From Basidiobolus meristosporus CBS 931.73 (taxonomy: Eukaryota; Fungi; Basidiobolomycota): 64,000 bases of DNA. The notes beneath the pieces were generated by a model. The model saw nothing but the letters and a program-made list of their open reading frames with translations, was not told the origin of the DNA and did not search any database. Of this stretch, positions 6,195-58,081 are shown one piece after another; position 1 is the stretch's first letter; each line of letters starts with the position of its first letter. The position numbers were made by a program, and so were the translations under genes. The stretch lies in contig MCFE01000037.1 in assembly GCA_002104905.1 (NCBI GenBank), forward strand, positions 124,001-188,000. Direction: 5' to 3'.

Positions 6195-6225
6195 GGTTAT
6201 GAGCCCCAAGCTGTCACTCTCTGCA

Positions 6226-22490: not shown

Positions 22491-23384
22491 TTACTGGCGG
22501 CGAGCAATGGTGGCGGTGATGTAGCCAGAGGGGTCACTGATGGGTTGGAAAATGTCCATGTCCTTGCCCTCGTTGGGGAGGTTGAAAGGTTTCAAGTTAA
22601 CGCTGATGTAGTGCTTGTTGGGAAGAGCATAGCTGATCTCGGTGACATCCACATTCTCGGCCAAAACCTTCTCGCCCATCTTGTACATGGTGGCTTGAAC
22701 AGAGGCAGAGTCATCAGTGGCGAAGGTGCCGAGGGTGATTTCACGAACGCTGCCGGCGATCTCGTCGAAAGGAATCTCCTCGATCTTGGACTTCTCCAAG
22801 TTATAGGTCCATTTGGCATCGACACTGGTGGAGAAGATACGGTCGGTGGCATCTTGGAGAGTGGTATTCTCACAACGATGGAAGTTGGTGAATGAGGAGC
22901 CGGTGGACTTCAACACAAGAAGGTCCTTGAGGCGAGACTCAATGGACACCTTTCCATCACGGGAGACAGTCAACTCAACACGTCTGGTTTCGTCACCATC
23001 ACGAAGGAAGGAGTGGGGGTGGAGTTGGCCATCGATGTTGACACGGGTCCAGCGGTGTTGGACGAGCTTGATGTATACATGGTCAACATGGGAGTATCTG
23101 TTGATGAAGTGTTGGCCGATCTCGTAACCGAAACGCTCGATGGTTTGAACATTATCAGACTTCTTGGCAAGAACATAGACGGTGTTCTTGACAGTGTCAG
23201 TGGGGACGACAACTGAGTTGTCAGCCTCGGTGTAGGAGGTCTCGAACTTGCCATCGAGGAGGACTTGAGCGGTGAGCTCAATAACATCATGCCAGTTCTT
23301 GGTGTGACGGATGACCTTGGTGACGCGCACCTTGGTCTTACCGTAGGCTTGTTTCTTCAAGTAGGCACCAGAGTTAGCAGACAT
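22491..23384 (-). CDS. UOX: Urate oxidase (uricase), type A, copy A1
   Basis: Motifs YGK, VPTDTVKN, LLVLKSTGSSF, DRIFST, SVQATMY and LPNKH. Likely start MSANSGAY (23384) by homology; ends -ARRQ. Confidence 0.95.
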   Translation of the reverse strand: MSANSGAYLKKQAYGKTKVRVTKVIRHTKNWHDVIELTAQVLLDGKFETSYTEADNSVVVPTDTVKNTVYVLAKKSDNVQTIERFGYEIGQHFINRYSHVDHVYIKLVQHRWTRVNIDGQLHPHSFLRDGDETRRVELTVSRDGKVSIESRLKDLLVLKSTGSSFTNFHRCENTTLQDATDRIFSTSVDAKWTYNLEKSKIEEIPFDEIAGSVREITLGTFATDDSASVQATMYKMGEKVLAENVDVTEISYALPNKHYISVNLKPFNLPNEGKDMDIFQPISDPSGYITATIARRQ

Positions 23385-23904
23385 AATGTTGGATAGAAGA
23401 CTGACAATATTGCTCAACCCCAACTGAGAGAGTGGGGGGATTTATATGAATCGTTCGGTTTCACATCATTCTAGATACTCTCATATCAACATCCATCTCT
23501 ATTTTGGTGAAGATTCATCTTCGGCCAAGTTACACAGGCAGAAGCACGGAGATTGTGGGTACTTTAGATCTGCGCAGTACTGATAATCGATTCAATCTTG
23601 TGTCATTTCCCGCACCATCAATGAGAAATCTGCCTGTGTCCAGATAATCAATTCCATCGACCCTCGTGAACTGGATAATTCTCTTTAGCCGTGGATGCAC
23701 GCAAATCTGGTGACATAACCATGGCTAGGATATCTCCTGCAGTGTGTTGTTCCCATTTCCGAAATCCTTCTTCGAACTCAGTATACTCATTGTGGTGGAT
23801 ATTGATATTGGATGCTGTATGAACATTAATTTATTTGCAACTTAGAGATCACAGTGAATGCATGCTTAATGGTAAGTTAGGGTTGTTCCAAAAACTTGGT
23901 CCGC

Positions 23905-24795
23905 TTAGAACTTGTTTCCACGACGACCAATGGTGGCAGTAATGTAGCCAGAGAAGTCGGTGACTGGAGAGAAAATGGTCATCTCTTGGCCAGCGTTGGG
24001 AAGGTTGAAGGGGGCAAGGTTGGTGGTGAAGTGATGGCTGTTGGGGAGTGCGTAGTACACATCACGGACTTCTGGGAAACGCTTCAAGATCAGCTCAGCC
24101 ATGCGGTACATGGTGGCCTGGACTGAGGCAGAGTCATCATGGGCGAACACATCAAGGGTGGTCTTACGGACTCCATCGAAGATGCGGTCGAATGGAATGT
24201 TCTCGACTCCAATCGAGGTGTCAATGTTGTAGTGGGCCTTGACGGTAGTGGAGAAGATACGGTCATCAGCATCTTGGAGAGTGGTGTTCTCGCAGAGATG
24301 GAAGTTGGTGAAGGATGAGCCGGTGGTCTTCAAGACGAGAAGGCCTTCCAAGCCAGACTTGATGCTGACATCGTTGGCGCTGACAGTGACCCAGGTCTCT
24401 CTGGTCTCGCTGCCGTCACGGTAGAAGGAGTGAGGGTGGGGCTCGCCGTTGACATTGATTCTGGTCCAGCGGAGTTGAACAATGTGGACGTGGGCGTGGG
24501 TGACATGAGGGTACTTGTCAACGAAGTGCTTGCCGAGTTCGTAACCGTAACGCTCGATGGTCTGAACGTGGTTGGACTTCTTGGCAATGATGTAGCAGGT
24601 GTTCTTGACAGTGTCGGTGGGGACGACCTTGCTGTTGTCAGCCTCGGTGTAAGCCTCTTCGAAGTCACCCTCGAGGAGCACTTGGACAGTGAGCTCGACA
24701 ATGTCGTTCCACTGGGGAGTGTGGCGGATAGCCTTGGTGACTCTGACCTTAGCCTTACCGTAGGCTTGGCGTTTTAACTCAACTGCAGAAGACAT
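23905..24795 (-). CDS. UOX: Urate oxidase, type B, copy B1
   Basis: Intact 296-aa ORF with all uricase motifs and LPNSH; ends -GNKF. Confidence 0.95.
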   Translation of the reverse strand: MSSAVELKRQAYGKAKVRVTKAIRHTPQWNDIVELTVQVLLEGDFEEAYTEADNSKVVPTDTVKNTCYIIAKKSNHVQTIERYGYELGKHFVDKYPHVTHAHVHIVQLRWTRINVNGEPHPHSFYRDGSETRETWVTVSANDVSIKSGLEGLLVLKTTGSSFTNFHLCENTTLQDADDRIFSTTVKAHYNIDTSIGVENIPFDRIFDGVRKTTLDVFAHDDSASVQATMYRMAELILKRFPEVRDVYYALPNSHHFTTNLAPFNLPNAGQEMTIFSPVTDFSGYITATIGRRGNKF

Positions 24796-25360
24796 TGTTG
24801 TATACGATTGGAACTAGGAACACTAATTATGGTGGAGTTCGTATGAAGCAATTTATACAACTCACCGAGATGAAGCGTACCACTGTTCGAGCCAATCATG
24901 GTGATTGGCGGCATAATGAATCCCACTAGATAATAACGGTGTTTGGCTCTATCAGTAGCTGCTAGATCAGATTCGAGTGTTCATCTAATCTTTCTGTGAG
25001 TAATTACCATCTTGAGCAATAGCCTAGAAAACATTACACATGTTTCAGATTGTGATTAATCTGATGATGAAATCTGGGAGATTTGATTGGAATTGCTGGC
25101 CGCGTGATCCACTGAATATGGATTCCACGAGCAGAGGTAGAGTTGGTGTGGAGCGAGTGCTAATGGCAAGCATGAATCGAGGCAATATCAATTCACAATG
25201 ATAATCAAAAGTAGCCCATAGTCAAGACCACGTGGTGTGCTATCAACGCGTTTTACAATGGCAACCTTTCATCACTTTTTAGTCGGTTTTATTACGGATT
25301 GACCAGGTCAATCAATGTTAATGGATGGTAATGAAAATGATCGTGAATACATTTACACGG

Positions 25361-26251
25361 TTAACGACGGGCAATAGTGGCAGTGATATAGCCAGATGGG
25401 TCACTGACAGGTTGGAAGATATCCATATCCTTGCCCTCGTTAGGAAGGTTGAAAGGCTTCAGGTTGACACTGAAGTAGTGCTTGTTGGGAAGAGCATAGC
25501 TGATCTCACTGACATCCTCAAAGCTGGCAAGAACCTTTTCGCCCATCTTGTACATGGTGGCTTGAACAGAGGCAGAGTTGTCAGTGGCGAAGGTGCTAAG
25601 TGTGATCTCACGAACACCCTCGGCAATTTCATCGAATGGAATCTCCTCAATCTTGGATTTATCAAGGTTGTACGTCCACTTGGCATCGACGCTGGTGGAG
25701 AAAATACGGTCGGTGGCATCTTGGAGAGTGGTGTACTCGCAACGGTGGAAGTTGGTGAATGAAGACCCAGTGGACTTCAACACAAGAAGGTCCTTGAGGC
25801 GGGACTCAATGGATACCTTACCGTTACGGGAGACAGTCAACTCCACACGTCTGGTCTCATCACCATCACGAAGGAAGGAGTGGGGGTGGAGTTGACCGTC
25901 GATCTCAACACGGGTCCAGCGGTGTTGGATAAGCTTGATGTAGACATCATCAACATGAGAGTATCTGTTGATGAAGTGTTGACCAATCTCGTAACCGAAA
26001 CGCTCGATGGTTTGAACTTGGTTGGACTTCTTGGCAAGGACATAGATGGTGTTCTTGACAGTGTCAGTGGGGACGACAACTGAGTTGTCAGCCTCGGTGT
26101 AGGAGGTCTCGAACTTGCCATCGAGGAGGACTTGAGCGGTGAGCTCAATAACATCATGCCAGTTCTTGGTGTGACGGATGACCTTTGTGAGGCGCACCTT
26201 GGTCTTACCGTAGGCTTGTTTCTTCAAGTAGGCACCAGATTTAGTAGACAT
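25361..26251 (-). CDS. UOX: Urate oxidase, type A, copy A2
   Basis: Intact 296-aa ORF with CEYTTL; ends -ARR. Confidence 0.95.
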   Translation of the reverse strand: MSTKSGAYLKKQAYGKTKVRLTKVIRHTKNWHDVIELTAQVLLDGKFETSYTEADNSVVVPTDTVKNTIYVLAKKSNQVQTIERFGYEIGQHFINRYSHVDDVYIKLIQHRWTRVEIDGQLHPHSFLRDGDETRRVELTVSRNGKVSIESRLKDLLVLKSTGSSFTNFHRCEYTTLQDATDRIFSTSVDAKWTYNLDKSKIEEIPFDEIAEGVREITLSTFATDNSASVQATMYKMGEKVLASFEDVSEISYALPNKHYFSVNLKPFNLPNEGKDMDIFQPVSDPSGYITATIARR

Positions 26252-26771: not shown

Positions 26772-27662
26772 TTAGAATTTGTTTCCACGACGACCAATGG
26801 TGGCAGTGATGTAGCCAGAGAAGTCGGTGACTGGAGAGAAAATGGTCATCTCTTGGCCAGCGTTGGGAAGGTTGAAGGGGGCAAGGTTGGTGGTGAAGTG
26901 ATGGCTGTTGGGGAGTGCGTAGTACACATCACGGACTTCTGGGAAACGCTTCAAGATCAGCTCAGCCATGCGGTACATGGTGGCCTGGACTGAGGCGGAG
27001 TCATCGTGAGCGAACACATCAAGGGTGGTCTTGCGGACTCCTTCAAAGATGCGGTCGAATGGAATGTTCTCGACTCCAATCGAGGTGTCAATGTTGTAGT
27101 GGGCCTTGACAGTGGTGGAGAAGATACGGTCATCAGCATCTTGGAGAGTGGTGTTCTCGCAGTGATGGAAGTTGGTGAAGGATGAGCCGGTGGTCTTCAA
27201 GACGAGAAGGCCTTCCAAGCCAGACTTGATGCTGACATCGTTGGCGCTGACAGTGACCCAGGTCTCTCTGGTCTCGCTGCCGTCACGGTAGAAGGAGTGA
27301 GGGTGAGGCTCGCCGTTGACATTGATTCTGGTCCAGCGGAGTTGAACAATGTGGACGTTAGCGTGGGTGACATGAGGGTACTTGTCAACGAAGTGCTTGC
27401 CGAGTTCGTAACCGTAACGCTCGATGGTCTGAACGTGGTTGGACTTCTTGGCAATGATGTAGCAGGTGTTCTTGACAGTGTCGGTGGGGACGACCTTGCT
27501 GTTGTCAGCCTCGGTGTAAGCCTCTTCGAAGTCACCCTCGAGGAGCACTTGGACAGTGAGCTCGACAATGTCGTTCCACTGGGGAGTGTGGCGGATAGCC
27601 TTGGTGACTCTGACCTTAGCCTTACCGTAGGCTTGGCGTTTTAACTCAACTGCAGAAGACAT
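26772..27662 (-). CDS. UOX: Urate oxidase, type B, copy B2
   Basis: Intact; start MSSAVELK at 27662 by homology; ends -GNKF. Confidence 0.95.
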   Translation of the reverse strand: MSSAVELKRQAYGKAKVRVTKAIRHTPQWNDIVELTVQVLLEGDFEEAYTEADNSKVVPTDTVKNTCYIIAKKSNHVQTIERYGYELGKHFVDKYPHVTHANVHIVQLRWTRINVNGEPHPHSFYRDGSETRETWVTVSANDVSIKSGLEGLLVLKTTGSSFTNFHHCENTTLQDADDRIFSTTVKAHYNIDTSIGVENIPFDRIFEGVRKTTLDVFAHDDSASVQATMYRMAELILKRFPEVRDVYYALPNSHHFTTNLAPFNLPNAGQEMTIFSPVTDFSGYITATIGRRGNKF

Positions 27663-28146
27663 TGTCGTATAAGATTTGGATGATACTGATGTACGAGACT
27701 GACCGAGGAATTCCTTATATACGGAACTAGACTTCACCACTAGGGAGCAATATAATCAATATCTCCATGATCAATTGATAATCAGGGAGCATCAACTGGC
27801 TAGGCACATAAGTCTCATTCTTGTTCATCACTTTCATCAATTATGTTGCTTTACCGGTTTTTGTGGGAACGATCTATATTGGCAATCAAGATCGATGTGA
27901 GAGGATTTTCGTTCCCTCCGTTTCACTTTGTTCATTAATGCCACTCTTGGTGACATGGCGGAGACCCAAATTCCTTTATCTCTCTCTTGCAACTCGGAAA
28001 TATATAGGAATTTGCGTTCCATCTGGTTAGAGATAGTTTAAAAATGCAAGTATTTATTAGATTTTACGATTCAGGACTTTACACTACTCCGTTGTTATGG
28101 TGATGTTGGATGAAATGAATGATGTGAACAATTGTTGGTGAACAAT

Positions 28147-29037
28147 CTAACGACGGGCGATAGTGGCAGTGATATAGCCAGATGGGTCACTGACAGGTTG
28201 GAAGATATCCATATCCTTGCCCTCGTTAGGAAGGTTGAAAGGCTTCAGGTTGACACTGAAGTAGTGCTTGTTGGGAAGAGCATAGCTGATCTCACTGACA
28301 TCCTCAAAGCTGGCAAGAACCTTTTCGCCCATCTTGTACATGGTGGCTTGAACAGAGGCAGAGTTGTCAGTGGCGAAGGTGCTAAGTGTGATCTCACGAA
28401 CACCCTCGGCAATTTCATCGAATGGAATCTCCTCAATCTTGGATTTATCAAGGTTGTACGTCCACTTGGCATCGACACTGGTGGAGAAAATACGGTCGGT
28501 GGCATCTTGGAGAGTGGTGTACTCGCAACGGTGGAAGTTGGTGAATGAAGACCCAGTAGACTTCAACACAAGAAGGTCCTTGAGGCGAGACTCGATGGAT
28601 ACCTTACCGTTACGGGAGACAGTCAACTCAACACGTCTGGTCTCATCACCATCACGAAGGAAGGAGTGGGGGTGGAGTTGACCGTCGATCTCAACACGGG
28701 TCCAGCGGTGTTGGATAAGCTTGATGTAGACATCATCAACATGAGAGTATCTGTTGATGAAGTGTTGACCAATCTCGTAACCGAAACGCTCGATGGTTTG
28801 AACTTGGTTGGACTTCTTGGCAAGGACATAGATGGTGTTCTTGACAGTGTCAGTGGGGACGACAACTGAGTTGTCAGCCTCGGTGTAGGAGGTCTCGAAC
28901 TTGCCATCGAGGAGGACTTGAGCGGTGAGCTCAATAACATCATGCCAGTTCTTGGTGTGACGGATGACCTTTGTGAGGCGAACCTTGGTCTTACCGTAGG
29001 CTTGTTTCTTTAAGTAGGCACCAGAGTTAGCAGACAT
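28147..29037 (-). CDS. UOX: Urate oxidase, type A, copy A3
   Basis: Intact 296-aa ORF, nearly identical to A2; ends -ARR. Confidence 0.95.
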   Translation of the reverse strand: MSANSGAYLKKQAYGKTKVRLTKVIRHTKNWHDVIELTAQVLLDGKFETSYTEADNSVVVPTDTVKNTIYVLAKKSNQVQTIERFGYEIGQHFINRYSHVDDVYIKLIQHRWTRVEIDGQLHPHSFLRDGDETRRVELTVSRNGKVSIESRLKDLLVLKSTGSSFTNFHRCEYTTLQDATDRIFSTSVDAKWTYNLDKSKIEEIPFDEIAEGVREITLSTFATDNSASVQATMYKMGEKVLASFEDVSEISYALPNKHYFSVNLKPFNLPNEGKDMDIFQPVSDPSGYITATIARR

Positions 29038-29578
29038 TTTGTGTATTATGTAATTCGGGGAAGCAACCCTCTTGTATTTATAGACCTAGCTCTCCCCTGA
29101 TCATGCTGCCATTTTAACTCCCCCTCACCCGCACGCAGGTTTGGAGCAATCCTATTAGTCAGGAAAGGAAGTCAGTACTTGAATTCAAGGAATCCTATTC
29201 GATGGTTAGATAAGAAATCATTCATTTATTACTATCCTTATTCGATTTGGTCACACTTTTCCGATTATCTTAATAGATTTAATCTCAACCCCCCTCACCT
29301 CCAGTTTCCTGATTTATCGTCTCTTCACGATCTAAACGCTGGGCTACTTATGAATATAGTCGAATACCATTCATGTGCATTTTTGGACATGGGTGTTAAA
29401 TCATACACGTCACGACCACTTGTGGCTAATTTGATGTTTGCTCCTGTTACTTTTTGCGTGGTTTTTTTCTTTTCTTTGTCTGTTCCTTTCTAAAACACAA
29501 TCCATTTAATTTGCGTCGAAATTTATTATGTATATAATGGTGTAGAGTTACAGATGCGAATGTAAATTGAATGATGAT

Positions 29579-30469
29579 TTAGAACTTGTTTCCACGACGG
29601 CCAATGGTGGCAGTGATGTAGCCAGAGAAGTCGGTGACTGGAGAGAAAATGGTCATCTCTTGGCCAGCGTTAGGGAGGCTGAAGGGGGCAAGGTTGGTGG
29701 TGAAGTGATGGCTGTTGGGGAGTGCGTAGTACACATCACGGACTTCTGGGAAGCGCTTCAAGATCAGCTCAGCCATGCGGTACATGGTGGCCTGGACTGA
29801 GGCAGAGTCATCGTGAGCGAACACATCAAGGGTGGTCTTGCGGACTCCTTCAAAGATGCGGTCGAATGGAATGTTCTCGACTCCAATCGAGGTGTCAATG
29901 TTGTAGTGGGCCTTGACGGTAGTGGAGAAGATACGGTCATCAGCATCCTGCAGGGTGGTGTTCTCGCAGCGATGGAAGTTGGTGAAGGACGAGCCGGTGG
30001 TCTTCAAGACGAGAAGGCCTTCCAAGCCAGACTTGATGCTGACATCGTTGGCGCTGACAGTGACCCAGGTCTCTCTGGTCTCGCTGCCGTCACGGTAGAA
30101 GGAGTGAGGATGAGGTTGACCATTAACATTAATTCTAGTCCAGCGGAGTTGAACGATGTGAACGTGGGCGTGGGTGACATGAGGGTACTTGTCAACGAAG
30201 TGCTTGCCGAGTTCGTAACCGTAACGCTCGATGGTCTGAACGTGGTTGGACTTCTTGGCAATGATGTAGCAGGTGTTCTTGACAGTGTCGGTGGGGACGA
30301 CCTTGCTGTTGTCAGCCTCGGTGTAAGCCTCTTCGAAGTCACCCTCAAGGAGCACTTGGCAGGTGAGCTCGACAATGTCGTTCCACTGAGGAGTGTGGCG
30401 GATAGCCTTGGTGACTCTGACCTTAGCCTTACCGTAGGCTTGGCGTTTTAACTCAACAGAGGTAGACAT
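29579..30469 (-). CDS. UOX: Urate oxidase, type B, copy B3
   Basis: Intact; start MSTSVELK at 30469; ends -GNKF. Confidence 0.95.
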   Translation of the reverse strand: MSTSVELKRQAYGKAKVRVTKAIRHTPQWNDIVELTCQVLLEGDFEEAYTEADNSKVVPTDTVKNTCYIIAKKSNHVQTIERYGYELGKHFVDKYPHVTHAHVHIVQLRWTRINVNGQPHPHSFYRDGSETRETWVTVSANDVSIKSGLEGLLVLKTTGSSFTNFHRCENTTLQDADDRIFSTTVKAHYNIDTSIGVENIPFDRIFEGVRKTTLDVFAHDDSASVQATMYRMAELILKRFPEVRDVYYALPNSHHFTTNLAPFSLPNAGQEMTIFSPVTDFSGYITATIGRRGNKF

Positions 30470-30570
30470 GGCTGGAAGATAGAATTTGGGATCTGCGTGT
30501 GCGAACCCTATTCCCAACCTGGTGATTTATATAATCGGGTGACAAAAATTTTCCCACCTCACACGGGATT

Positions 30571-30617
30571 GATGATTCGGATGATTCGGATGATTCAGAT
30601 AATCTTCGAAGATAATC
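30571..30617. repeat. Short tandem repeat (GATGATTCR)3 followed by two GATAATC motifs, upstream of uricase B3
   Basis: The sequence reads gatgattcg gatgattcg gatgattca gataatc ttcgaa gataatc. Confidence 0.7.
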
Positions 30618-31679
30618 AGTATGATGGGAACACTCTTCGGTGTGCACAGCAATCTAGGCTTCGTACATGATGCACTGAAATATATTCACGAGATTAACCG
30701 TTGACTATATCAACCTGTATAGCGATTTATATTCTCAGTTAGAATCATGCGTTACTGATGAACAATGCCACCATATATAGTAATACCCTGGAGGATATTC
30801 TCGGATTTCCTGCAAACACCTTCCTTAATTACCCATAATGATGCAGGAAGCAGTCACAGATTCCGATGATAGTTTCAGATAATCTTTCAATTTCGGCGTA
30901 TTTGTTGTAAAGGGTATTACGAAGCGGATAATGGTGTATCAAACAACTCGAGGCCTAATCCCATTGCCATATAACTTATGTAAATCATTGACAGAGGAAG
31001 TGGGGGCCTTCTCTATTTTAAGTAATCTGCTTGAAGGTTTGGTGGTTTCTTGGGAGGCATCTCACCCCCATCTCTTCGTTGGGATATTTGATGTACAGCC
31101 TAAATATTGAAGTACGGTTGTATGGTGCATCCACACCTCTTTGGCAACGCTTTGGAACCAATTTGATATGTTTAACATATGGGGAATTAAGATATTTTGT
31201 TTTAGGCAATTGTTTGAAGCATTGCAATATTATTTATATGTTGGTATCTTTCGGTGAATTGGAGAGCCCACAGTCATCCAAGTCTAAAGCACTAATATTT
31301 CTGATAGAGTATTTATAATTTCTGGGAAACTTCATAATACCAAAGATGAGGATGCTATATGAAAGACCCCAGGAAGCTGTTTGTAAAGTTTGAGAGCTTT
31401 TGGTCGAGTTTGAAAATATTGATAACTTCCTAATTCAAAGAATCAGCTAATATCTTACAAACCAAATCTCAAGCAAATAATTCATAACTTAGCGATAGGC
31501 CAAATAGATTTTTAAGGTATATGAATGGCTTAGGTGTAAACGGAATACTTACAACAGATACTCCAGGACCTGTAAGTACTTGCAACCAAATTGACTTCGA
31601 GCACCAATACCAAGACCATGTTTAAGTAAATATGGCAGCATTTGTCTCCAACAAAATGTTGTAATAGTGTATTGACACC

Positions 31680-31990
31680 TAAATGTTCCATCAGCTTTGT
31701 CATTTAGATCATAGTTTACTATTTCCTGTCCAAATTTACTTTCAGCATGTACTTGGAATATCTTCACCAATATGTCAAGTGACCATACATGAAAATTGGC
31801 CAAGTATCCCAAAAGCCCCTAGACTTTGCACACATGCCATTAGGATCTTTCTAGACATATTTGATGCGTTTCTTTTGCCAAGACTTAGTAAAAGTATAAG
31901 CCTCATTTTTTCATTTAATAGGCCCTGAAGTAGAGACCATACAATCTTCTTGCTCTCCCAATCACTTCTGATATTGACAAGACCCTCACA
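31680..31990 (+). repeat. Degenerate copia LTR remnant (same family as 5846-6194)
   Basis: Shared blocks tacttggaatatcttcacca, actttgcacacat, gtaaaagtataa and ccaatcacttct. Confidence 0.65.
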
Positions 31991-33011
31991 GCATGATATG
32001 CAAGATTTATTTGGAAGAGATTCAGTAGCATTTGGCATTCAGTAGGTTGGAAGAGTTTTATTGAGAAATGATTACAGTAAAATCTAAAGGCTACATATGT
32101 CAGAATTTTCGAAAATGGATTTTGCTTGGATCTGGTAGCTAGGCCTCATACTTTGCCTGGGATTAGTATGCATCATGGTCAGTATTTTGCGCGCAGCATC
32201 ATGCTCACATATGGACCTGATCCTCATTTTTGAGATGCTGTGAGCTTAATCCAAGTTGGGTTTCTGCCGATTGTCACATGTTATTCTTATGGCAACCATC
32301 CAAAATTTCTGATAGGATAATCATCACCACCAACATCCAGCATATGATTCACTTGCCTTATCAATGAACTCCAAGCGTATGTTCGGAGATAGAAAAGTTG
32401 AAGCCCTTGCCGATTCAAATATCACCCAACAGATCCACGGGCCCTTTGTTGTTCGAGAACGTAGTGTACCATAGTGGTTTGCCAGAGAGTGATAAGGTTG
32501 GGTAAGGCGGATTATGGAATCATCGACCCGGGTATGGATTAAGTGATTACAATCAGCACCAAAGCCAATTGATTTCAAAACAATAGATTTCCCTCCAGTA
32601 TATTTCAGTGATTCCCAGTCCACCCAAATCTGATAAGTTATCAAAACAGATCTTTCTAGATCAGAGCGTGATTTTTGCTGGGAATTCGAAGGGTTCCAAA
32701 ATTACCTAATCACTACCGCAATTGGGGAGCGTATTTTACGTCGGTTACAGAATCCTCCACTCAAATCAAGTTCCTCTAAGTAGTGAGATCGAGTTTAAAC
32801 CGTTTTCATTTTCCCGATTATTAATCAGAGGCTGAAAAAAGCCTGGATTATATAGTAGAGCGGGTGGGGTTTATTTGCGGAAATAAAAATCCCACCTTCC
32901 TTTACCTTCCTCTCATACTCTCTTCTCTAGATATATAGCCATATATATCCCTTCGGTGCCAACCCAGTTTCCAACCACACCCAGGATATTTTTGTAAACC
33001 AAACAGCCACC

Positions 33012-34028
33012 ATGTTCGAAATAAACGCGGGCGATAGAGTTCTCTTGGTCGGGAACCCCCAGGTGAAAATGGAAGCCCTGGTGCAATGTCGTAGCGAGCT
33101 TGACCAGAAAGTCTCCCCTAACGGAAAGGTGGATTTCGAGCAATTCGACCGCATTCCTATTCGTAAGTGCTGTTGCTACGGATCTTTCAAATGATTCGGC
33201 GTTCTGACCTGTGTTGTTCTTTTAGTTTATCTTTCACCCATCTACAACGCCATCTTGACCGGTGTCCTCCAGCCTTCAGGAACAGCCCATAACGCAGTTG
33301 TTCTTAGAAAGCTTCTAGGCGCTCTGTTGCCGGGAGGTCGGATTATCCTTCACGAGCCTGCCTTGGTTGAGGGAGAGCAGAATACTGCCGCCCCCGTCAA
33401 CCGCACAGCCAAAGATATCGTTTCGGAACTCAAGATCAGCGGCTTCATCGACATCTCGGTGAACAGCAGGATTCTCACTGAAGAGGAGCTGAACGACTAC
33501 ATCCAAAACACCTGGAGTCTCCAGGATAGAGACAATGCTCACCAAAGCCTCCAAGGGAAACTGGAGATGGTGCAAATCGTTGCCAAGAAGCCTGCTTACG
33601 AAGTAGGCGCCTCGGCCGCTCTTCCTTTCGCGCGCAAAAAGGCAGCCACTCAAGCCACCAAAAGAGCGGCAGTCTGGAAGATCAGCGCCAATGACGAAGA
33701 CGAGGAGCTGGAAGACGAAGACGACCTTTTGGATGAAGAGGATCTGGCCAAGCCTGACCCCAGCTCTTTGACCAAACCTGACGATTGCAGCAGCAAGAAG
33801 AAGGCCTGTAAGAACTGCTCCTGTGGCCTCTCGGAGGAGTTGGAGGAAAAGAAAAGGGTGGTGCCTAAGCCCACTCCAGCCCCCGCCCCCGTATCATCCT
33901 GTGGTAGCTGCTACTTGGGAGATGCTTTCCGTTGTGGTAGCTGTCCGTATTTAGGGATGCCGGCTTTCAAGCCTGGCGAGAAGGTCCAACTGGGCGGCAA
34001 CATGATGGCAGATGACATCGACCTCTAA
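33012..34028 (+). CDS. DRE2: Fe-S cluster assembly protein Dre2/anamorsin (exons 33012-33162, 33226-34028)
   Basis: C-terminal CX8CX2CXC-type ([15 protein letters not shown]) and CX2CX7CX2C ([18 protein letters not shown]) motifs, an acidic linker, and an N-terminal methyltransferase-like region. Confidence 0.95.
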
Positions 34029-44792: not shown

Positions 44793-45683
44793 ATGTCTGC
44801 ATCTGTTGAGTTGAAGCGCCAAGCCTATGGTAAAGCCAAGGTCAGAGTCACCAAGGCCATTCGCCACACCGCCCAATACAACGACATCGTTGAGCTCACT
44901 TGCCAAGTCCTTCTCGAGGGTGACTTCGAAGAGGCTTACACCAAGGCTGACAACAGCATGGTTGTCCCCACTGACACTGTCAAGAACACCTGCTACGTCA
45001 TTGCCAAGAAGTCCGACCATGTTCAGACCATCGAGCGTTATGCCTACGAGCTCGGCAAGCACTTCGTTGACAAGTACACCCATGTCACCCATGCTCATGT
45101 GCACATTGTCAAGTACCGCTGGGCCAGAATCAATGTCAACGGCGAGCCCCACCCTCACTCCTTCTACCGCGATGGTAGTGAGACCAGAGAGACCTGGGTC
45201 ACAGTCAGTGCGAACGATGTCAGCATCAAGTCTGGCTTGGAAGGCCTCCTTGTGTTGAAGACCACCGGCTCGTCCTTCACCAACTTCCATCGCTGCGAGA
45301 ACACCACTCTCCAAGATGCTGATGACCGTATCTTCTCCACCACTGTCAAGGCCCACTACAACATCGACACCTCGGTTGGAGTCGAGAACATTCCATTCGA
45401 CCGCATCTTTGAAGGAGTCCGCAAGACCACCCTTGATGTGTTCGCCCACGATGACTCTGCCTCAGTCCAGGCCACCATGTACCGCATGGCTGAGTTGATC
45501 TTGAAGCGCTTCCCAGAAGTCCGTGATGTGTACTACGCCCTCCCCAACAGCCATCACTTCACCACCAACCTTGCCCCCTTCAACCTCCCGAATGCTGGCC
45601 AAGAGATGACCATTTTCTCCCCAGTCACCGACTTCTCTGGATACATTACTGCTACCATTGGTCGTCGTCGCAGCAACTTCTAA
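44793..45683 (+). CDS. UOX: Urate oxidase, type B, copy B5
   Basis: Intact; start MSASVELK; ends -RRRSNF. Confidence 0.95.
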   Translation: MSASVELKRQAYGKAKVRVTKAIRHTAQYNDIVELTCQVLLEGDFEEAYTKADNSMVVPTDTVKNTCYVIAKKSDHVQTIERYAYELGKHFVDKYTHVTHAHVHIVKYRWARINVNGEPHPHSFYRDGSETRETWVTVSANDVSIKSGLEGLLVLKTTGSSFTNFHRCENTTLQDADDRIFSTTVKAHYNIDTSVGVENIPFDRIFEGVRKTTLDVFAHDDSASVQATMYRMAELILKRFPEVRDVYYALPNSHHFTTNLAPFNLPNAGQEMTIFSPVTDFSGYITATIGRRRSNF

Positions 45684-47141: not shown

Positions 47142-48033
47142 TTAACGACGAGCAATGGTAGCAGTAATATAGCCAGATGGATCACTGATGGGTTGGAAGA
47201 TATTCATGTCCTTGCCTTCGTTGGGGAGGTTGAAGGGCTTCAAGTTGACGCTGAGGTAGTGCTTGTTGGGAAGAGCATAGCTGATCTCGCTGACATCCAC
47301 GTTCTGTCCCAACACCTTCTCACCCATTTGGTACATGGTAGCTTGCACCGAGGCTGAGTCATCGGTGGCGAAGGTGCTGAGGGTGATCTCACGAACGCTG
47401 CTGGCGATCTCGTCGAATGGAATCTCCTCGATCTTGGACTTCTCAAGGTTGTAGGTCCACTTGGCATCCACACTGGTGGAGAAGATGCGGTCGGTGGCGT
47501 CCTGGAGAGTGGTGTTCTCACAACGGTGGAAGTTGGTGAATGATGAGCCGGTGGACTTCAACACAAGGAGGTCCTTGAGGCGGGACTCGATGGACACCTT
47601 TCCATCACGAGAGACAACCAGCTCAACACGTCTGGTCTCATCACCGTCACGGAGGAAGGAGTGCGGGTGGAGCTGGCCATCGATCTCAACGCGGGTCCAG
47701 CGGTGCTGGATGAGCTTGATGTAGACATCATCGACATGAGAGTATCTGTTGATGAAGTGTTGACCAATCTCGTAGCCGAAACGCTCGATGGTCTGGACAT
47801 TCTCGGACTTCTTGGCGAGGACATAGAGGGTGTTCTTGACAGTGTCAGTGGGGACAACGACAGAGTTGTCAGCCTCGGTGTAGGAGGTCTCGAACTTGCC
47901 ATCGAGGAGGACTTGAGCGGTGAGCTCGACAACATCGTGCCAGTTCTTAGTGTGGCGGATGATCCTTGGTGATGCGAACCTTGGTCTTGCCATAGGCTTG
48001 CTTCTTCAAATAGGCACTGGAAGTGTTGGACAT
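47142..48033 (-). CDS. UOX: Urate oxidase, type A, copy A6; +1 frameshift at about 47962
   Basis: Length 892 nt; reads gatgaTccttgg versus gatgaccttgg in paralogs. Confidence 0.8.
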
Positions 48034-48554: not shown

Positions 48555-49445
48555 ATGTCTGCCTCTGTTCAATTAAAACGTCAAGCCTATGGTAAAGCCA
48601 AGGTCAGAGTCACCAAGGCCATCCGCCACACCGCCCAATACAACGACATTGTCGAGCTCACTTGCCAAGTCCTTCTCGAGGGTGACTTCGAAGAGGCTTA
48701 CACCAAGGCTGACAACAGCATGGTTGTCCCCACTGACACTGTCAAGAACACCTGCTACGTCATTGCCAAGAAGTCCGACCATGTTCAGACCATCGAACGT
48801 TATGCCTACGAGCTCGGCAAGCACTTCGTTGACAAGTACTCCCATGTCACCCATGCTCATGTGCACATTGTCAAGTACCGCTGGGCCAGAATCAATGTCA
48901 ACGGCGAGCCCCACCCTCACTCCTTCTACCGTGACGGCAGCGAGACCAGAGAGACCTGGGTCACGGTCAGTGCGAACGATGTCAGCATCAAGTCTGGCTT
49001 GGAAGGCCTTCTTGTGTTAAAGACCACCGGCTCGTCCTTCACCAACTTCCATCACTGCGAGAACACCACTCTCCAAGACGCTGATGACCGTATCTTCTCC
49101 ACCACTGTCAAGGCCCACTACAACATCGACACCTCGATTGGAGTCGAGAACATTCCATTCGACCGCATCTTTGAAGGAGTCCGCAAGACCACCCTGGATG
49201 TGTTCGCCCACGATGACTCTGCCTCAGTCCAGGCCACCATGTACCGCATGGCTGAGCTGATCTTGAAGCGCTTCCCAGAAGTCCGTGATGTGTACTACGC
49301 CCTCCCCAACAGCCATCACTTCACCACCAACCTTGCCCCCTTCAACCTCCCTAACGCTGGCCAAGAGATGACCATTTTCTCCCCTGTTACTGACTTCTCT
49401 GGATACATCACCGCAACCATTGGTCGTCGTGGCAACAAATTCTAA
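48555..49445 (+). CDS. UOX: Urate oxidase, type B, copy B6
   Basis: Intact 296-aa ORF; ends -GNKF. Confidence 0.95.
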   Translation: MSASVQLKRQAYGKAKVRVTKAIRHTAQYNDIVELTCQVLLEGDFEEAYTKADNSMVVPTDTVKNTCYVIAKKSDHVQTIERYAYELGKHFVDKYSHVTHAHVHIVKYRWARINVNGEPHPHSFYRDGSETRETWVTVSANDVSIKSGLEGLLVLKTTGSSFTNFHHCENTTLQDADDRIFSTTVKAHYNIDTSIGVENIPFDRIFEGVRKTTLDVFAHDDSASVQATMYRMAELILKRFPEVRDVYYALPNSHHFTTNLAPFNLPNAGQEMTIFSPVTDFSGYITATIGRRGNKF

Positions 49446-50305: not shown

Positions 50306-51196
50306 TTAACGACGAGCAATGGTAGCAGTGATATAGCCAGATGGATCACTGATGGGTTGGAAGATGTTCATGTCCTTGCCTTCGTTGGGGAGGTTGAAGG
50401 GCTTCAAGTTGACGCTGAGGTAGTGCTTGTTGGGAAGAGCATAGCTGATCTCGCTGACATCCACGTTCTGTCCCAACACCTTCTCACCCATTTGGTACAT
50501 GGTGGCTTGCACCGAGGCTGAGTCATCGGTGGCGAAGGTGCTGAGGGTGATCTCACGAACGCTGCTGGCGATCTCGTCGAATGGAATCTCCTCGATCTTG
50601 GACTTCTCAAGGTTGTAGGTCCACTTGGCATCCACACTGGTGGAGAAGATGCGGTCGGTGGCATCCTGGAGAGTGGTGTTCTCACAACGGTGGAAGTTGG
50701 TGAATGATGAGCCGGTGGACTTCAACACAAGGAGATCCTTGAGGCGGGACTCGATGGACACCTTTCCATCACGAGAGACAACCAGCTCAACACGTCTGGT
50801 CTCATCACCGTCACGGAGGAAGGAGTGCGGGTGGAGCTGGCCATCGATCTCAACGCGGGTCCAGCGGTGCTGGATGAGCTTGATGTAGACGTCATCGACA
50901 TGAGAGTATCTGTTGATGAAGTGTTGGCCAATCTCGTAGCCGAAACGCTCGATGGTCTGGACATTCTCGGACTTCTTGGCGAGGACATAGAGGGTGTTCT
51001 TGACAGTGTCAGTGGGGACAACGACAGAGTTGTCAGCCTCGGTGTAGGAGGTCTCGAACTTGCCATCGAGGAGAACTTGAGCGGTGAGCTCGACAACATC
51101 ATGCCAGTTCTTGGTGTGGCGGATGACCTTGGTGATGCGAACCTTGGTCTTGCCATAGGCTTGCTTCTTCAAGTAGGCACCGGAAGTGTTGGACAT
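50306..51196 (-). CDS. UOX: Urate oxidase, type A, copy A7
   Basis: Intact 296-aa ORF. Confidence 0.95.
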   Translation of the reverse strand: MSNTSGAYLKKQAYGKTKVRITKVIRHTKNWHDVVELTAQVLLDGKFETSYTEADNSVVVPTDTVKNTLYVLAKKSENVQTIERFGYEIGQHFINRYSHVDDVYIKLIQHRWTRVEIDGQLHPHSFLRDGDETRRVELVVSRDGKVSIESRLKDLLVLKSTGSSFTNFHRCENTTLQDATDRIFSTSVDAKWTYNLEKSKIEEIPFDEIASSVREITLSTFATDDSASVQATMYQMGEKVLGQNVDVSEISYALPNKHYLSVNLKPFNLPNEGKDMNIFQPISDPSGYITATIARR

Positions 51197-51677: not shown

Positions 51678-52569
51678 ATGTCTGGAGCTGTTGAGTTGAA
51701 GCGTCAAGCCTATGGTAAAGCCAAGGTCAGAGTCACCAAGGCCATTCGCCACACCGCCCAGTACAACGACATCGTTGAGCTCACTTGCCAAGTCCTTCTC
51801 GAGGGTGACTTCGAAGAGGCTTACACCAAGGCTGACAACAGCATGGTTGTCCCCACTGACACTGTCAAGAACACCTGCTACGTCATTGCCAAGAAGTCCG
51901 ACCATGTTCAGACCATCGAGCGTTATGCTTACGAGCTCGGCAAGCACTTCGTTGACAAGTACACCCATGTCACCCATGCTCATGTGCACATTGTCAAGTA
52001 CCGCTGGGCCAGAATCAATGTCAACGGCGAGCCCCACCCTCACTCCTTCTACCGTGACGGCAGCGAGACCAGAGAGACCTGGGTCACAGTCAGTGCGAAC
52101 GATGTCAGCATCAAGTCTGGCTTGGAAGGCCTTCTTGTGTTGAAGACCACCGGTTCGTCCTTCACCAACTTCCATCACTGCGAGAACACCACTCTCCAAG
52201 ACGCTGATGACCGTATCTTCTCCACCACTGTCAAGGCCCACTACAACATCGACACCTCGATTGGAGTCGAGAACATTCCATTCGACCGCATCTTCGACGG
52301 AGTCCGCAAGACCACCCTTGGATGTGTTCGCTCACGATGACTCTGCCTCAGTCCAGGCCACCATGTACCGCATGGCTGAGTTGATCTTGAAGCGCTTCCC
52401 AGAAGTCCGTGATGTGTACTACGCCCTCCCCAACAGCCATCACTTCACCACCAACCTTGCCCCCTTCAGCCTCCCTAACGCTGGCCAAGAGATGACCATT
52501 TTCTCCCCAGTCACCGACTTCTCTGGATACATTACTGCTACCATTGGCCGTTGTAACACCAAATTCTAA
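51678..52569 (+). CDS. UOX: Urate oxidase, type B, copy B7; +1 frameshift at about 52320
   Basis: Length 892 nt; reads acccttGgatgtg; ends -CNTKF. Confidence 0.8.
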
Positions 52570-53089: not shown

Positions 53090-53977
53090 TTAACGACGGG
53101 CAATGGTGGCAGTGATATAGCCAGATGGATCACTGATGGGTTGGAAGATGTTCATGTCCTTGCCTTCGTTGGGAAGGTTGAAGGGCTTCAAGTTGACGCT
53201 GAGGTAGTGCTTGTTGGGAAGAGCATAGCTGATCTCGCTGACATCCACGTTCTGTCCCAACACCTTCTCACCCATTTGGTACATGGTGGCTTGCACCGAG
53301 GCTGAGTCATCGGTGGCGAAGGTGCTGAGGGTGATCTCACGAACGCTGCTGGCGATCTCGTCGAATGGAATCTCCTCGATCTTGGACTTCTCAAGGTTGT
53401 AGGTCCACTTGGCATCCACACTGGTGGAGAAGATGCGGTCAGTGGCATCCTGGAGAGTGGTGTTCTCACAACGGTGGAAGTTGGTGAATGAGGAGCCGGT
53501 GGACTTCAACACAAGGAGGTCCTTGAGGCGGGACTCGATGGACACCTTTCCATCACGAGAGACAACCAGCTCAACACGTCTGGTCTCATCACCGTCACGG
53601 AGGAAGGAGTGCGGGTGGAGCTGGCCATCGATCTCAACGCGGGTCCAGCGGTGCTGGATGAGCTTGATGTAGACATCATCGACATGAGAGTATCTGTTGA
53701 TGAAGTGTTGACCAATCTCGTAACCGAAACGCTCGATGGTCTGGACATTCTCGGACTTCTTGGCGAGGACATAGAGGGTGTTCTTGACAGTGTCGGTGGG
53801 GACAACGACAGAGTTGTCAGCCTCGGTGTAGGAGGTCTCGAACTTGCCATCGAGGAGGACTTGAGCGGTGAGCTCGACAACATCGTGCCAGTTCTTAGTG
53901 TGGCGGATGACCTTGGTGATGCGAACCTTGGTCTTGCCATAGGCTTGTTTCTTCAAGTAAGCAACGGAATTAGGCAT
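53090..53977 (-). CDS. UOX: Urate oxidase, type A, copy A8
   Basis: Intact 295-aa ORF, start MPNSVAY. Confidence 0.95.
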   Translation of the reverse strand: MPNSVAYLKKQAYGKTKVRITKVIRHTKNWHDVVELTAQVLLDGKFETSYTEADNSVVVPTDTVKNTLYVLAKKSENVQTIERFGYEIGQHFINRYSHVDDVYIKLIQHRWTRVEIDGQLHPHSFLRDGDETRRVELVVSRDGKVSIESRLKDLLVLKSTGSSFTNFHRCENTTLQDATDRIFSTSVDAKWTYNLEKSKIEEIPFDEIASSVREITLSTFATDDSASVQATMYQMGEKVLGQNVDVSEISYALPNKHYLSVNLKPFNLPNEGKDMNIFQPISDPSGYITATIARR

Positions 53978-54483: not shown

Positions 54484-55374
54484 ATGTCAGGTTCAGTAGA
54501 GTTGAAGCGTCAAGCCTATGGTAAAGCCAAGGTCAGAGTGACCAAGGCCATCCGCCACACCGCCCAGTACAACGACATCGTTGAGCTCACTTGCCAAGTC
54601 CTTCTCGAGGGTGACTTCGAAGAGGCTTACACCAAGGCTGACAACAGCATGGTTGTCCCCACTGACACTGTCAAGAACACCTGCTACGTCATTGCCAAGA
54701 AGTCCGACCATGTTCAGACCATCGAACGTTATGCCTACGAGCTCGGCAAGCACTTCGTTGACAAGTACACCCATGTCACCCATGCTCATGTGCACATTGT
54801 CAAGTACCGCTGGGCCAGAATCAATGTCAACGGCGAGCCCCACCCTCACTCCTTCTACCGTGACGGCAGCGAGACCAGAGAGACCTGGGTCACAGTCAGT
54901 GCGAACGATGTCAGCATCAAGTCTGGCTTGGAAGGCCTTCTTGTGTTGAAGACCACCGGTTCGTCCTTCACCAACTTCCATCACTGCGAGAACACCACTC
55001 TCCAAGACGCTGATGACCGTATCTTCTCCACCACTGTCAAGGCCCACTACAACATCGACACCTCGATTGGAGTCGAGAACATTCCATTCGACCGCATCTT
55101 CGACGGAGTCCGCAAGACCACCCTTGATGTGTTCGCTCACGATGACTCTGCCTCAGTCCAGGCCACCATGTACCGCATGGCTGAGTTGATCTTGAAGCGC
55201 TTCCCAGAAGTCCGTGATGTGTACTACGCACTCCCCAACAGCCATCACTTCACCACCAACCTTGCCCCCTTCAACCTCCCTAACGCTGGCCAAGAGATGA
55301 CCATTTTCTCCCCAGTCACCGACTTCTCTGGATACATTACTGCTACCATTGGCCGTCGTAGGAACAAATTCTAG
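54484..55374 (+). CDS. UOX: Urate oxidase, type B, copy B8
   Basis: Intact; start MSGSVELK at 54484; ends -RRRNKF. Confidence 0.95.
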   Translation: MSGSVELKRQAYGKAKVRVTKAIRHTAQYNDIVELTCQVLLEGDFEEAYTKADNSMVVPTDTVKNTCYVIAKKSDHVQTIERYAYELGKHFVDKYTHVTHAHVHIVKYRWARINVNGEPHPHSFYRDGSETRETWVTVSANDVSIKSGLEGLLVLKTTGSSFTNFHHCENTTLQDADDRIFSTTVKAHYNIDTSIGVENIPFDRIFDGVRKTTLDVFAHDDSASVQATMYRMAELILKRFPEVRDVYYALPNSHHFTTNLAPFNLPNAGQEMTIFSPVTDFSGYITATIGRRRNKF

Positions 55375-55872: not shown

Positions 55873-56039
55873 GACGATAGTAGCAGCGATGTGGCCGGAA
55901 GGATCACTGATGGGCCGGAAGTGCTCACGTCCCTGAGCTTGCCATCAAGGAGGACTTGAGCAGTGAGCTCGACAACATCATGCCAGTTCTTGGTGTGGCG
56001 GATGACCTTAGTGATGCGAACCTTGGTCTTACCATAGGC
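55873..56039 (-). pseudogene. Type A uricase remnant with about 700-bp internal deletion
   Basis: A degraded 3' end (gacgatagtagcagcgatgtggccggaaggatcactgatgg) is joined directly to the 5' segment (cttgccatcaaggaggacttgagc...accataggc). Confidence 0.85.
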
Positions 56040-56587: not shown

Positions 56588-57441
56588 ATGTCTGATTCGG
56601 TTGGTAAAGCCAAGGTCATCCGCCACACTGCCCAATACAACGACGTTGTCGAGCTCACTTGCCAGGTGCTTCTCGAGGGCGACTTCGAAGAGGCTTACAC
56701 CAAGGCTGACAACAGCATGGTTGTCCCCACTGACACTGTCAAGAACACCTGCTACGTCATTGCCAAGAAGTCCGACCATGTTCAGACCATCGAGCGTTAT
56801 GCTTACGAGCTTGGCAAGCACTTCGTTGACAAGTACTCTCATGTCACCCATGCTCATGTGCACATTGTCAAGTACCGCTGGACCAGAATTAACATCAATG
56901 GCGAGCTTCACCCTCACTCCTTCTACCGTGACGGCAGTGAGACCAGAGAGACCTGGGTCACAGTCAGTGCGAACGATGTCAGCATCAAGTCTGGCTTGGA
57001 AGGCCTTCTTGTGTTGAAGACCACCGGCTCGTCCTTCACCAGCTGCCATCACTGTGAGAACACCACTCTCCAAGACGCTGATGGCCGTATCTTCTCCACC
57101 ACTGTCAAGGCCCATTACAACATCGACACCTCGATTGGAGTCGAGAACATTCCCTTCGACCGCATCTTTGAAGGAGTCCGCAAGACCACCCTGGATGTGT
57201 TCGCTCACGATGACTCTGCCTCAGTCCAGGCCACCATGTACCGCATGGCTGAGTTGATCTTGAAGCGTTTCCCAGAAGTCTGTGATGTGTACTACGCACT
57301 CCCCAACAGCCATCACTTCACCACCAACCTTGCCCCTTCAACCTCCCTAACGCTGGCCAAGAGATGGCCATTTTCTCCACTGTAACTGATTTCTCTAGCT
57401 ATATCACTGCTACCATTGTTCGTCGTGGTAACAAGTTTCAA
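56588..57441 (+). pseudogene. Urate oxidase, type B, copy B9, decaying pseudogene
   Basis: N-terminal deletions (MSDSVGKAKVIRH), the substitutions FTSCHH, ADGRIF and EVCDVY, a frameshift at about 57335 and loss of the stop codon. Confidence 0.88.
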
Positions 57442-57542
57442 TTTTCATCAGTGCCTGCCTTCTCTGATTAGATAACCGTCACAATTGGCCGCCACTACCC
57501 CGTATTCGGTCATCATAAAATACGACTGGTTCGCCTCACATT

Positions 57543-57569
57543 TTAGGGTTAGGGTAACCCTAACCCTAA
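57543..57569. repeat. Head-to-head telomere-type repeat palindrome (TTAGGG)2-TAA-(CCCTAA)2
   Basis: The sequence reads ttagggttaggg taa ccctaaccctaa. Confidence 0.8.
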
Positions 57570-57606
57570 GCATAAAATTTGAGGTTGAGCAAAAAACTTC
57601 CATGAC

Positions 57607-57850
57607 TTATAGTTTGTTTCCCCCACGACCAATGATGGGGGTGAAGTAACCCAAGATGTCAGTAATGGGTGAGGAGATGACTATTTAGGAATGGTGTCTA
57701 TTGGGGAGAGCATAGTACACATCATGGACTTCGGGGAAGTACAAGAACAACTCAGCCAGGCGGTACATGGTGGCCTGGACTGAGGCAGAGTCATCATGAG
57801 CGAACACATCCAAGGTGGTCTTGCAGACACCTTCAAAGATACAGTGGAAT
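57607..57850 (-). pseudogene. Type B uricase C-terminal remnant (inverted)
   Basis: The reverse strand reads FEGVCKTTLDVFAHDDSASVQATMYRLAEL...YYALPNRH, with deletions. The terminus reads gga aac aaa cta taa (GNKL*). Confidence 0.85.
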
Positions 57851-57880
57851 AGGATGAGTAATCCCTGATACCAGAGCTGA

Positions 57881-58081
57881 CACGATGTTATTGAGCTCAC
57901 CGCTCAAGTCCTCCTCGATGGCAAGTTCGAGACTTCCTACACCGAGGCTGACACCTCTGTCGTTGTCCCCACTGACACTGTCAAGAACACCCTCTATGTC
58001 CTCGCCCAGAAGGCCGAGAATGTCCAGACCATCGAGCGTTTCGGCTACGAGATTGGTCAACACTTCATCAACAGATACTCT
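57881..58081 (+). pseudogene. Type A uricase N-terminal remnant (inverted)
   Basis: Reads HDVIELTAQVLLDGKFETSYTEADTSVVVPTDTVKNTLYVLAQKAENVQTIERFGYEIGQHFINRYS, truncated at both ends. Confidence 0.88.

Follow-up and report, generated by a model that had tools for sequence, protein, structure and literature searches.

Urate oxidase (uricase) is usually encoded by one gene per genome and works as a homotetramer; it also serves as a drug (rasburicase, pegloticase). What, then, is to be made of a fungal chromosome segment that holds a whole array of uricase genes, in two types that take turns along the DNA? Such an array lies at positions 22491-58081 of the eukaryotic stretch analyzed here, 64,000 nucleotides from Basidiobolus meristosporus CBS 931.73 (contig MCFE01000037.1, positions 124,001 to 188,000), which we call the window. 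It raises the questions of whether the copies are real, how the two types (A and B) arose, and whether they form one enzyme or two. We believe that the array is probably an old and concertedly evolving one, made of copies of a Basidiobolus-specific uricase gene pair, with the use of urate as its likely purpose.

The array and its enzymes

Uricase loci were mapped by tblastn with one A-type and one B-type copy as queries. The region holds eight A-type and nine B-type genes of near full length plus three fragments, and 12 of the open reading frames are intact, six of each type (Table 1). The near full-length genes alternate strictly, with no A-A or B-B neighbors, in two different layouts. In the left block (A1 to B6, 22.5-30.5 kb), all genes are co-oriented on the minus strand; in the right block (A7 to B18, 40.6-57.4 kb), they form head-to-head A(-)/B(+) pairs. 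Amino acid identity within the window is 92-99% between A copies, 93-99% between B copies, and 61-65% between the types. A preliminary description of this DNA, made from its letters alone, had given the same gene counts, an A/B identity of about 60% with mostly more than 90% within a type, and strict alternation in a tandem left and a divergent right part, all of which were reproduced by tblastn and a check of the open reading frames. The loci fetched from this genome together hold 25 uricase genes of near full length; of these, 20 are intact, divided evenly into 10 A and 10 B.

Each copy tested matches Pfam PF01014 twice per protein (E = 1e-56 to 1e-73). Against TIGR03383, the NCBIfam equivalog for factor-independent urate hydroxylase, A scores 350.4 bits and B 319.6 bits, with a cutoff of 168.4, and Aspergillus flavus uricase structures align end to end with both types in phmmer searches (E = 1e-82 for A and 1e-69 for B). 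When catalytic residues were placed by alignment to the A. flavus chains and numbered accordingly, Lys10, Thr57, Asp58, Phe159, Arg176, Gln228, Asn254, and His256 proved invariant in all 25 intact Basidiobolus copies examined, so that the earlier statement that both types keep all of these active-site residues holds for 8 of 8. Both A and B likewise retain both halves of the active site that is formed between subunits. Judged by these profile, structure, and residue matches, A and B are real urate oxidase genes.

The two types are not equally conservative in the rest of the core. A comparison with 99 other fungal uricases gave 84 alignment columns with a conservation of at least 90%. A departs from these at three, all of them shared with B and none on its own; B departs at seven, and five of these changes are private to it, among them a replacement of Pro by Phe where the outgroups are invariant.

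An array of this kind might be the product of long-read misassembly, with a few copies inflated into many. The assembly is PacBio based, and one-base frameshifts and differences of ~0.3% from short-read contigs show that it does contain some consensus error. On the other side stand coding sequences (CDS) that differ between window copies at 1-17% of their nucleotides, spacers that are unrelated in sequence, and the depth of the reads. Read contigs of three runs, X1, X2, and X3, were compared over window positions 28000-33999 (left block and the anamorsin gene). The DNA-like runs X1 and X2 cover this interval completely, at a single-copy depth of ~185-205 over intergenic DNA and anamorsin. Among the uricase contigs, copy-specific ones lie at about 1x (depths of 188, 201, 202, and 208) and those common to two copies at about 2x (367 and 389), and the A5-B6 junction is spanned by a 623-nt contig at 1x depth. 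Since the copies are diverged, their spacers are unrelated, and copy-specific contigs occur at single-copy depth, we reject inflation of the array, an explanation that now seems extremely improbable. The depths agree with the copy structure of the assembly, and the low read depth that the preliminary description had named as a sign of inflated copy number is not what the runs display.

Single letters of the assembly call for more care. Over window positions 30518-33088, a single-copy spacer of 2.5 kb, the X1 and X2 contigs differ from the assembly by ~8 substitutions and one 7-nt indel (near 32706), which reflect either consensus error of the assembly or an allelic difference and therefore advise caution over the three one-base frameshifts in the array. 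These are found in A7, A11, and B14, each of which has one 1-nt insertion relative to its intact neighbors and no in-frame stop, and they may be consensus errors of the PacBio assembly. B8 and B18, however, are truly decayed.

No RNA run was among the sequencing runs listed, and evidence for expression comes from run X3, which is labeled "DNA?" and behaves as a transcriptome: intergenic cover is absent, the 63-nt GT..AG intron of anamorsin is spliced, and one loose end carries an Illumina adapter. An 845-nt A-type contig of this run (28101-28943) extends into the 3' flank that is specific to A5, some of its letters being those of A3, and a 539-nt B-type contig (29898-30435) matches B6 with 0 mismatches, whereas B2 differs from it at 21 sites and B4 at 24. 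The A contig has a word depth of 959 and the B6 contig one of 764, close to the 931 of anamorsin. Both the A and the B type are transcribed.

Age and origin of the gene pair

Ratios of nonsynonymous to synonymous change (dN/dS), calculated by the Nei-Gojobori method, are 0.02-0.10 in every comparison and 0.03-0.10 within the array. Between the left and right blocks, synonymous divergence (dS) reaches 0.3-0.67 and dN/dS is still at most 0.10. Between species, dS is saturated, and dN/dS is 0.02-0.07 at a syntenic locus with a single pair, to which we return below.

This constraint on the proteins goes together with a sharp boundary in nucleotide similarity. Within the CDS, mean pairwise identity is 85-100% per 30-column bin, with the exception of the first one or two 5' bins and the 3' edge bin; within 30 nt beyond the CDS, it has dropped to ~37%. 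Most spacers give local-alignment z scores of ~0 against each other, even where the CDS are 99% identical; for example, the B2-A3 spacer cannot be aligned with the B4-A5 spacer. As a control, the recent duplicate pairs on contig 249 keep 95% spacer identity. The orthologous spacers of the syntenic locus in the two species cannot be aligned either. The duplications in the window are therefore old and date back about as far as the divergence of the species, if not further. The spacers within the blocks (n = 16, between neighboring uricase genes) are mostly 460-565 bp long despite their unrelated sequence; two of them reach 860 and 1458 bp.

Runs of concordant polymorphic sites are longer than expected in the pairs A13-A15, A9-A15, and B14-B16 (permutation test, p < 0.0005; significant after correction), and such mosaic tracts are the pattern expected from gene conversion. 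The array is, on this combination of features, evidently old and homogenized by gene conversion, in its coding sequences alone.

In a maximum likelihood tree, all Basidiobolus uricases form one clade (support 99/99), in which A (100/98) and B (100/100) are sisters, and this clade is nested among uricases of Glomeromycotina, Mortierellomycotina, and Thamnocephalis. We therefore place the A/B duplication in the Basidiobolus lineage itself, before the split of its two major species clades. A bacterial origin or horizontal transfer of A or B was considered and rejected, given these sister clades nested among early-diverging fungi. The B stem is about three times longer than the A stem (0.49 versus 0.16). 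Both halves of the tree contain a "syntenic locus" subclade and an "array" subclade, and these matching subclades imply that pairs were copied as pairs.

The two types are also paired beyond the window. At seven further loci in two species, every complete copy adjoins one of the other type. In B. meristosporus, one head-to-head B<->A pair lies on contig 43 (L001), two pairs lie on contig 249 (L002), and one lies on contig 705 (L003), which was tried as a haplotig of the array and rejected because its similarity is limited to the two CDS. In B. ranarum, a pair that is syntenic with that of contig 43 and not amplified (L004), one further pair (L005), and a decayed pair (L007) were found, together with co-oriented B>A>B units on two short contigs (L008 and L009) that resemble the left block of the window. 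A lone B gene (L006) starts 120 nt from the end of its contig, with any partner out of view. The preliminary description had held that unlinked A and B genes in relatives would speak against a two-subunit enzyme; we looked for them in B. ranarum, and complete copies with visible flanks are paired there. The A/B pair is older than the array.

The syntenic loci of the two species share genes for ATP synthase E, a polyprenyl synthase, a PALP enzyme, a deaminase, an RRM protein, and a zinc-finger protein. The deaminase belongs to the adenosine/adenine deaminase family (PF00962) and adjoins the pair in both species (L001:11135-12616 and L004:11316-12830). Near the syntenic pair of B. ranarum, we also noted a gene for 520 amino acids with a Thiol_cytolysin (cholesterol-dependent cytolysin) Pfam domain (L004:484-2105), an unusual family in a fungus that may be of bacterial acquisition.

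Taken together, we propose the following course of events. One ancestral fungal urate oxidase gene would have been duplicated in the Basidiobolus lineage into A, which kept a conservative core and presumably lost its C-terminal peroxisomal signal, and B, which would have retained a tail resembling such a signal on a faster-evolving core. The two genes may then have settled head-to-head around a short common spacer of 0.26-0.67 kb that most likely acts as a promoter in both directions, after which the pair, and not the single gene, would have been copied to several loci. At the array locus, this would have given about nine pairs, in co-oriented tandem and head-to-head layouts, that end in a telomere-repeat scar. 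Gene conversion would keep the coding sequences alike while the spacers drift beyond alignment, and purifying selection would keep most copies working. The likely purpose would be a high dosage of uricase, with uric acid serving as a nitrogen source in the excreta and gut of uricotelic hosts.

Geckos excrete nitrogen largely as urates. The urate-rich niche guessed at in the preliminary description fits the origin of this strain, which was isolated from gecko dung (PMC7466969). The same description had proposed a dosage-amplified system for urate degradation. Intact urate oxidase genes, purifying selection, and transcription bear out the existence of a working system; its amplification for the sake of dosage, the link to the niche, and any division of labor between A and B are suggested rather than demonstrated by copy number, selection, and provenance.

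Several points weigh against our preferred explanation. Five of the 17 near full-length copies are broken in this assembly, and so some copies are not being kept. A benefit of dosage is argued from copy number and selection. Searches for shared promoter motifs found the GATA-containing AGATAATC and TATATAA in 6-11 of 17 spacers, no more often than in shuffled sequences. Runs X1 and X2 may derive from the same sample as the assembly. The evidence for expression comes from one transcriptome-like set of contigs, in which contig depth is a poor measure of expression, and covers the transcripts of two left-block genes.

If the explanation is right, the large uricase array of a fungus isolated from gecko dung connects copy number with the nitrogen waste of uricotelic hosts, a connection that can be examined across the Basidiobolus genomes now being sequenced. 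The array would also be a clean case of concerted evolution limited to coding sequence. With two diverged, coinherited types and 20 intact natural uricase variants, this genome may serve as a natural experiment, and since every copy has unique flanks, copy-specific expression should be measurable.

Two types, one enzyme or two

The preliminary description took the strict alternation as a sign of a two-subunit enzyme. We reject this argument: alternation is no independent evidence for a heteromer, because duplication of a pair, or unequal crossover of an AB unit, keeps the ABAB order automatically, and any duplicated segment with the period of a pair gives ABAB again, as does unequal exchange between homologous genes. 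The simpler alternative that it had also mentioned, an AB pair as the unit of duplication, is correct for the pattern of the array. In the left block, the values for A3-A5 (dS, 0.04) and B2-B4 (dS, 0.06) record a recent event, A1 and B6 being older, and this pattern is best read as a shift of one B-A unit.

One might go further and regard A and B as redundant, with the pair being simply what unequal crossover happened to copy and with no division of labor between its members. Such passive hitch-hiking would make the alternation automatic, and both the decay of several copies and the telomere-repeat scar at the right end of the array would suit it. It seems improbable to us nonetheless, as both types have remained intact since before the split of B. 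meristosporus and B. ranarum, under strong constraint at the syntenic locus, no locus has lost just one partner, and the two types differ consistently in their C-terminal tails. The pair appears to be a functional unit, because it is kept at the single-pair syntenic locus in two species and at other loci, with both members constrained.

The tails deserve a closer look. About 90 of 104 non-Basidiobolus fungal matches end in SKL, AKL, ARL, SRL, PKL, or TKL, which are classic or near-classic peroxisomal targeting signals of type 1 (PTS1). We used the C-terminal tripeptide [SAC][KRH][LMI] as the criterion. A-type proteins of both species fall outside it; they end in ...ATIARR plus at most two residues (one copy in ...ARGQ), the observed ends being ARR, ARRQ, ARRT, ARRR, ARGQ, or ARRGY. 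Every B-type protein has retained a tail of ordinary length. In B. ranarum, this tail is SKI at the syntenic locus, SRI at L005, and NRI in the lone B gene L006; in B. meristosporus, it is TKI on contig 43, NKI on contig 249, and NKF in the window array, with SNF in B10. SKI and SRI of B. ranarum fit a relaxed PTS1 consensus, and TKI, NKI, NKF, and SNF of B. meristosporus do not. The uricase of Schizosaccharomyces pombe (...ARK) also lacks a PTS1.

Other routes by which A might carry an address were considered. In-frame extensions behind the A stop codons were checked and none ends in a PTS1, so a cryptic signal exposed by stop-codon read-through was rejected. A PTS2-like N terminus was rejected by eye, since the R-L/V-x5-H-T motif lies in the conserved region of the catalytic lysine, is common to A and B, and is off consensus. 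The two types may thus have retained complementary parts of the ancestral protein, A a conservative core without an address and B an address-like tail on a faster-evolving core. This asymmetry can be read in two ways, as a sign of mixed tetramers with B as the carrier of A into peroxisomes or of separate cytosolic and peroxisomal enzymes. In view of the conserved pair and the asymmetric tails, a heterotetramer or a two-compartment system is plausible.

Conceivably, A and B are two independent homotetrameric isozymes, B peroxisomal and A cytosolic, or differing in kinetics, that are coregulated without touching each other. The difference in tails is as expected for this, both types have a full catalytic set, S. 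pombe demonstrates that tail-less fungal uricases exist, and the long B stem fits functional divergence. A cytosolic oxidase that produces H2O2 would be costly at high dosage, however, and separate isozymes do not explain why no complete A or B is seen without a neighboring partner at the loci examined. We hold this possibility only tentatively. The other reading is a heterotetramer, obligate or preferred, that would assemble in the cytosol, with the B tail importing A and the two-way promoter balancing the subunits. Its attraction is that it would account for the conservation of the pair at every locus with a visible partner in two species, for the equal numbers of intact A and B genes (6:6 in the window and 10:10 across the fetched loci of this genome), and for the complementary losses, A being without a tail but free of private changes at conserved sites and B keeping its tail but carrying five. 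The absence of read-through PTS1 signals behind the A stops also suits it, and in lactate dehydrogenase (LDH), subunits that lack a PTS are known to be imported piggy-back on a paralogue that bears a PTS1 (PMC4680570). Yet both types keep both active-site halves, so that A4 and B4 would each be complete enzymes and nothing forces a heteromer. In addition, the array B tails NKF and SNF are not canonical PTS1 signals, a preference for the monomer has been reported in the peroxisomal import of canonical urate oxidase (PMC4680570), and the putative shared promoter has been lost in the left block. On balance, a mixed tetramer strikes us as rather unlikely.

Were A and B nevertheless to form a mixed tetramer, it would be the first heteromeric urate oxidase, a new quaternary form, and a new case of piggy-back peroxisomal import. 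Duplication and complementary loss would then have tied two paralogues together at 1:1, and amplification would have acted on the resulting pair as a whole. The literature searched contains no paper that links uricase with Basidiobolus, and it describes no heteromeric uricase and no fungal uricase expansion; public records already annotate Basidiobolus proteins as "uricase." What seems to be new here is a lineage-specific paralogue pair that is amplified, evolves in concert, and bears asymmetric putative targeting tails, the enzyme itself being ordinary.

Setting of the array and related systems

The gap of ~10 kb between the left and right blocks holds the anamorsin and CRM1 genes (Table 1). 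At the right end of the array, head-to-head telomere repeats lie between inverted 3' parts of B genes (57148-57332 versus 57630-57856, 83-90% complementary). The structure resembles a scar left at the array edge by an end-to-end fusion or a palindromic healing event. It speaks for a chromosome-end history, and gene families are known to be amplified in such settings.

Table 1. Uricase genes and other features in and around the array (window positions)
Feature	Position	tblastn extent	Strand	Description
A1	22491-23384	22497-23384	-	intact A-type; ends ...ARRQ
B2	23905-24795	23908-24795	-	intact B-type; ends ...GNKF
A3	25361-26251	25364-26251	-	intact A-type; ends ...ARR
B4	26772-27662	26775-27662	-	intact B-type
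A5	28147-29037	28150-29037	-	intact A-type; run X3 transcript contig over 28101-28943
B6	29579-30469	29582-30469	-	intact B-type; run X3 transcript contig over 29898-30435
anamorsin (Dre2)	32982-34028		+	63-nt intron 33163-33225; single-copy housekeeping gene in array gap
CRM1/exportin-1	34925-38456		-	exons 34925-37423, 37758-38024, possibly more to ~38456; housekeeping
A7	40628-41519	40631-41519	-	A-type, 99% identical to A9; one inserted C near 41331
B8	42031-42922	42031-42919	+	decayed B-type; several indels and one in-frame stop
A9	43385-44275	43388-44275	-	intact A-type; head-to-head with B10
B10	44793-45683	44793-45680	+	intact B-type; ends ...RSNF
A11	47142-48033	47145-48033	-	A-type; one inserted A near 47963
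B12	48555-49445	48555-49442	+	intact B-type
A13	50306-51196	50309-51196	-	intact A-type
B14	51678-52569	51678-52566	+	B-type; one inserted T near 52318
A15	53090-53977	53093-53977	-	intact A-type, 295 aa
B16	54484-55374	54484-55371	+	intact B-type
A fragment	55884-56039		-	residues ~12-65
B18	56603-57441	56603-57438	+	decayed B-type; lacks its 5' end and has deletions of 15 nt and 1 nt
head-to-head telomere repeats (TTAGGG)2-T-(AACCCT)2	57543-57569		.	array right end, between inverted B 3' ends
B C-terminal fragment	57610-57855		-	inverted arm across telomere scar
A fragment	57881-58081		+	residues ~32-98; in-frame stop

Just upstream of the array, at 16160-21756, two paralogues of inosine-uridine nucleoside hydrolase flank an Aa_trans amino acid transporter, and this block may be part of a neighborhood for purine or nucleoside utilization. 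The hydrolase block has a GC content of 52-55%; its two paralogues are 82% identical, with a stretch of 110 residues that is 100% identical, which suggests that gene conversion may have acted there too. Farther upstream lie a fragment of a tnp2-family transposase and a copia-type long terminal repeat retrotransposon (gag, integrase, and reverse transcriptase), at 1481-2305 and 5923-9703. Copies of these elements, 77-92% alike, directly follow the two uricase pairs of contig 249 (L002:11164-20885).

Some public gene models in the array should be used with care. In model P0010 (302 amino acids, "uricase," ~22491-24795), an N-terminal half taken from B2 is linked across a modeled intron to a C-terminal half taken from A1, which is probably a gene-model artifact. 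Models P0005, P0015, and P0026 are shortened as well, possibly skirting breaks.

As enzymes, both types resemble A. flavus Uox (rasburicase) and UaZ, the PF01014/TIGR03383 proteins, in their length of ~296 amino acids, their two T-fold domains, and the eight active-site residues. A canonical fungal uricase usually comes as one gene per genome, in contrast to the two sister types and 25 near full-length genes found here; a few Mucorales among the protein matches hold two or three uricase genes. The canonical enzyme is also a homotetramer, mostly with a C-terminal PTS1, whereas in Basidiobolus A has none and the B tail is noncanonical. For the possible transport of A by B, the nearest parallel is the import of LDHA and LDHB into peroxisomes on LDHBx, a read-through form that bears a PTS1 (PMC4680570). 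LDH is likewise a tetramer in which one PTS1-bearing type of subunit can carry others, but its carrier is a rare read-through product of the same gene, while the candidate carrier of uricase would be a separate paralogue encoded 1:1.

As gene arrangements, two other systems come to mind. The CUP1 array of yeast and the subtelomeric SUC, MAL, and MEL families are tandem dosage amplifications of niche genes, and the uricase array likewise combines many functional copies of a metabolic gene with a chromosome-end history and a copy number that is plausibly under selection. It differs in that its unit is a pair of diverged paralogues and in that it is old and gene converted instead of a recent burst. 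Divergent histone gene pairs (H2A-H2B and H3-H4) also lie head-to-head on a short spacer and are copied as a pair, a layout that gives balanced expression to partners that are proven heterodimers. Uricase A and B, in contrast, have no known interaction, and in the left block the head-to-head layout has been given up.

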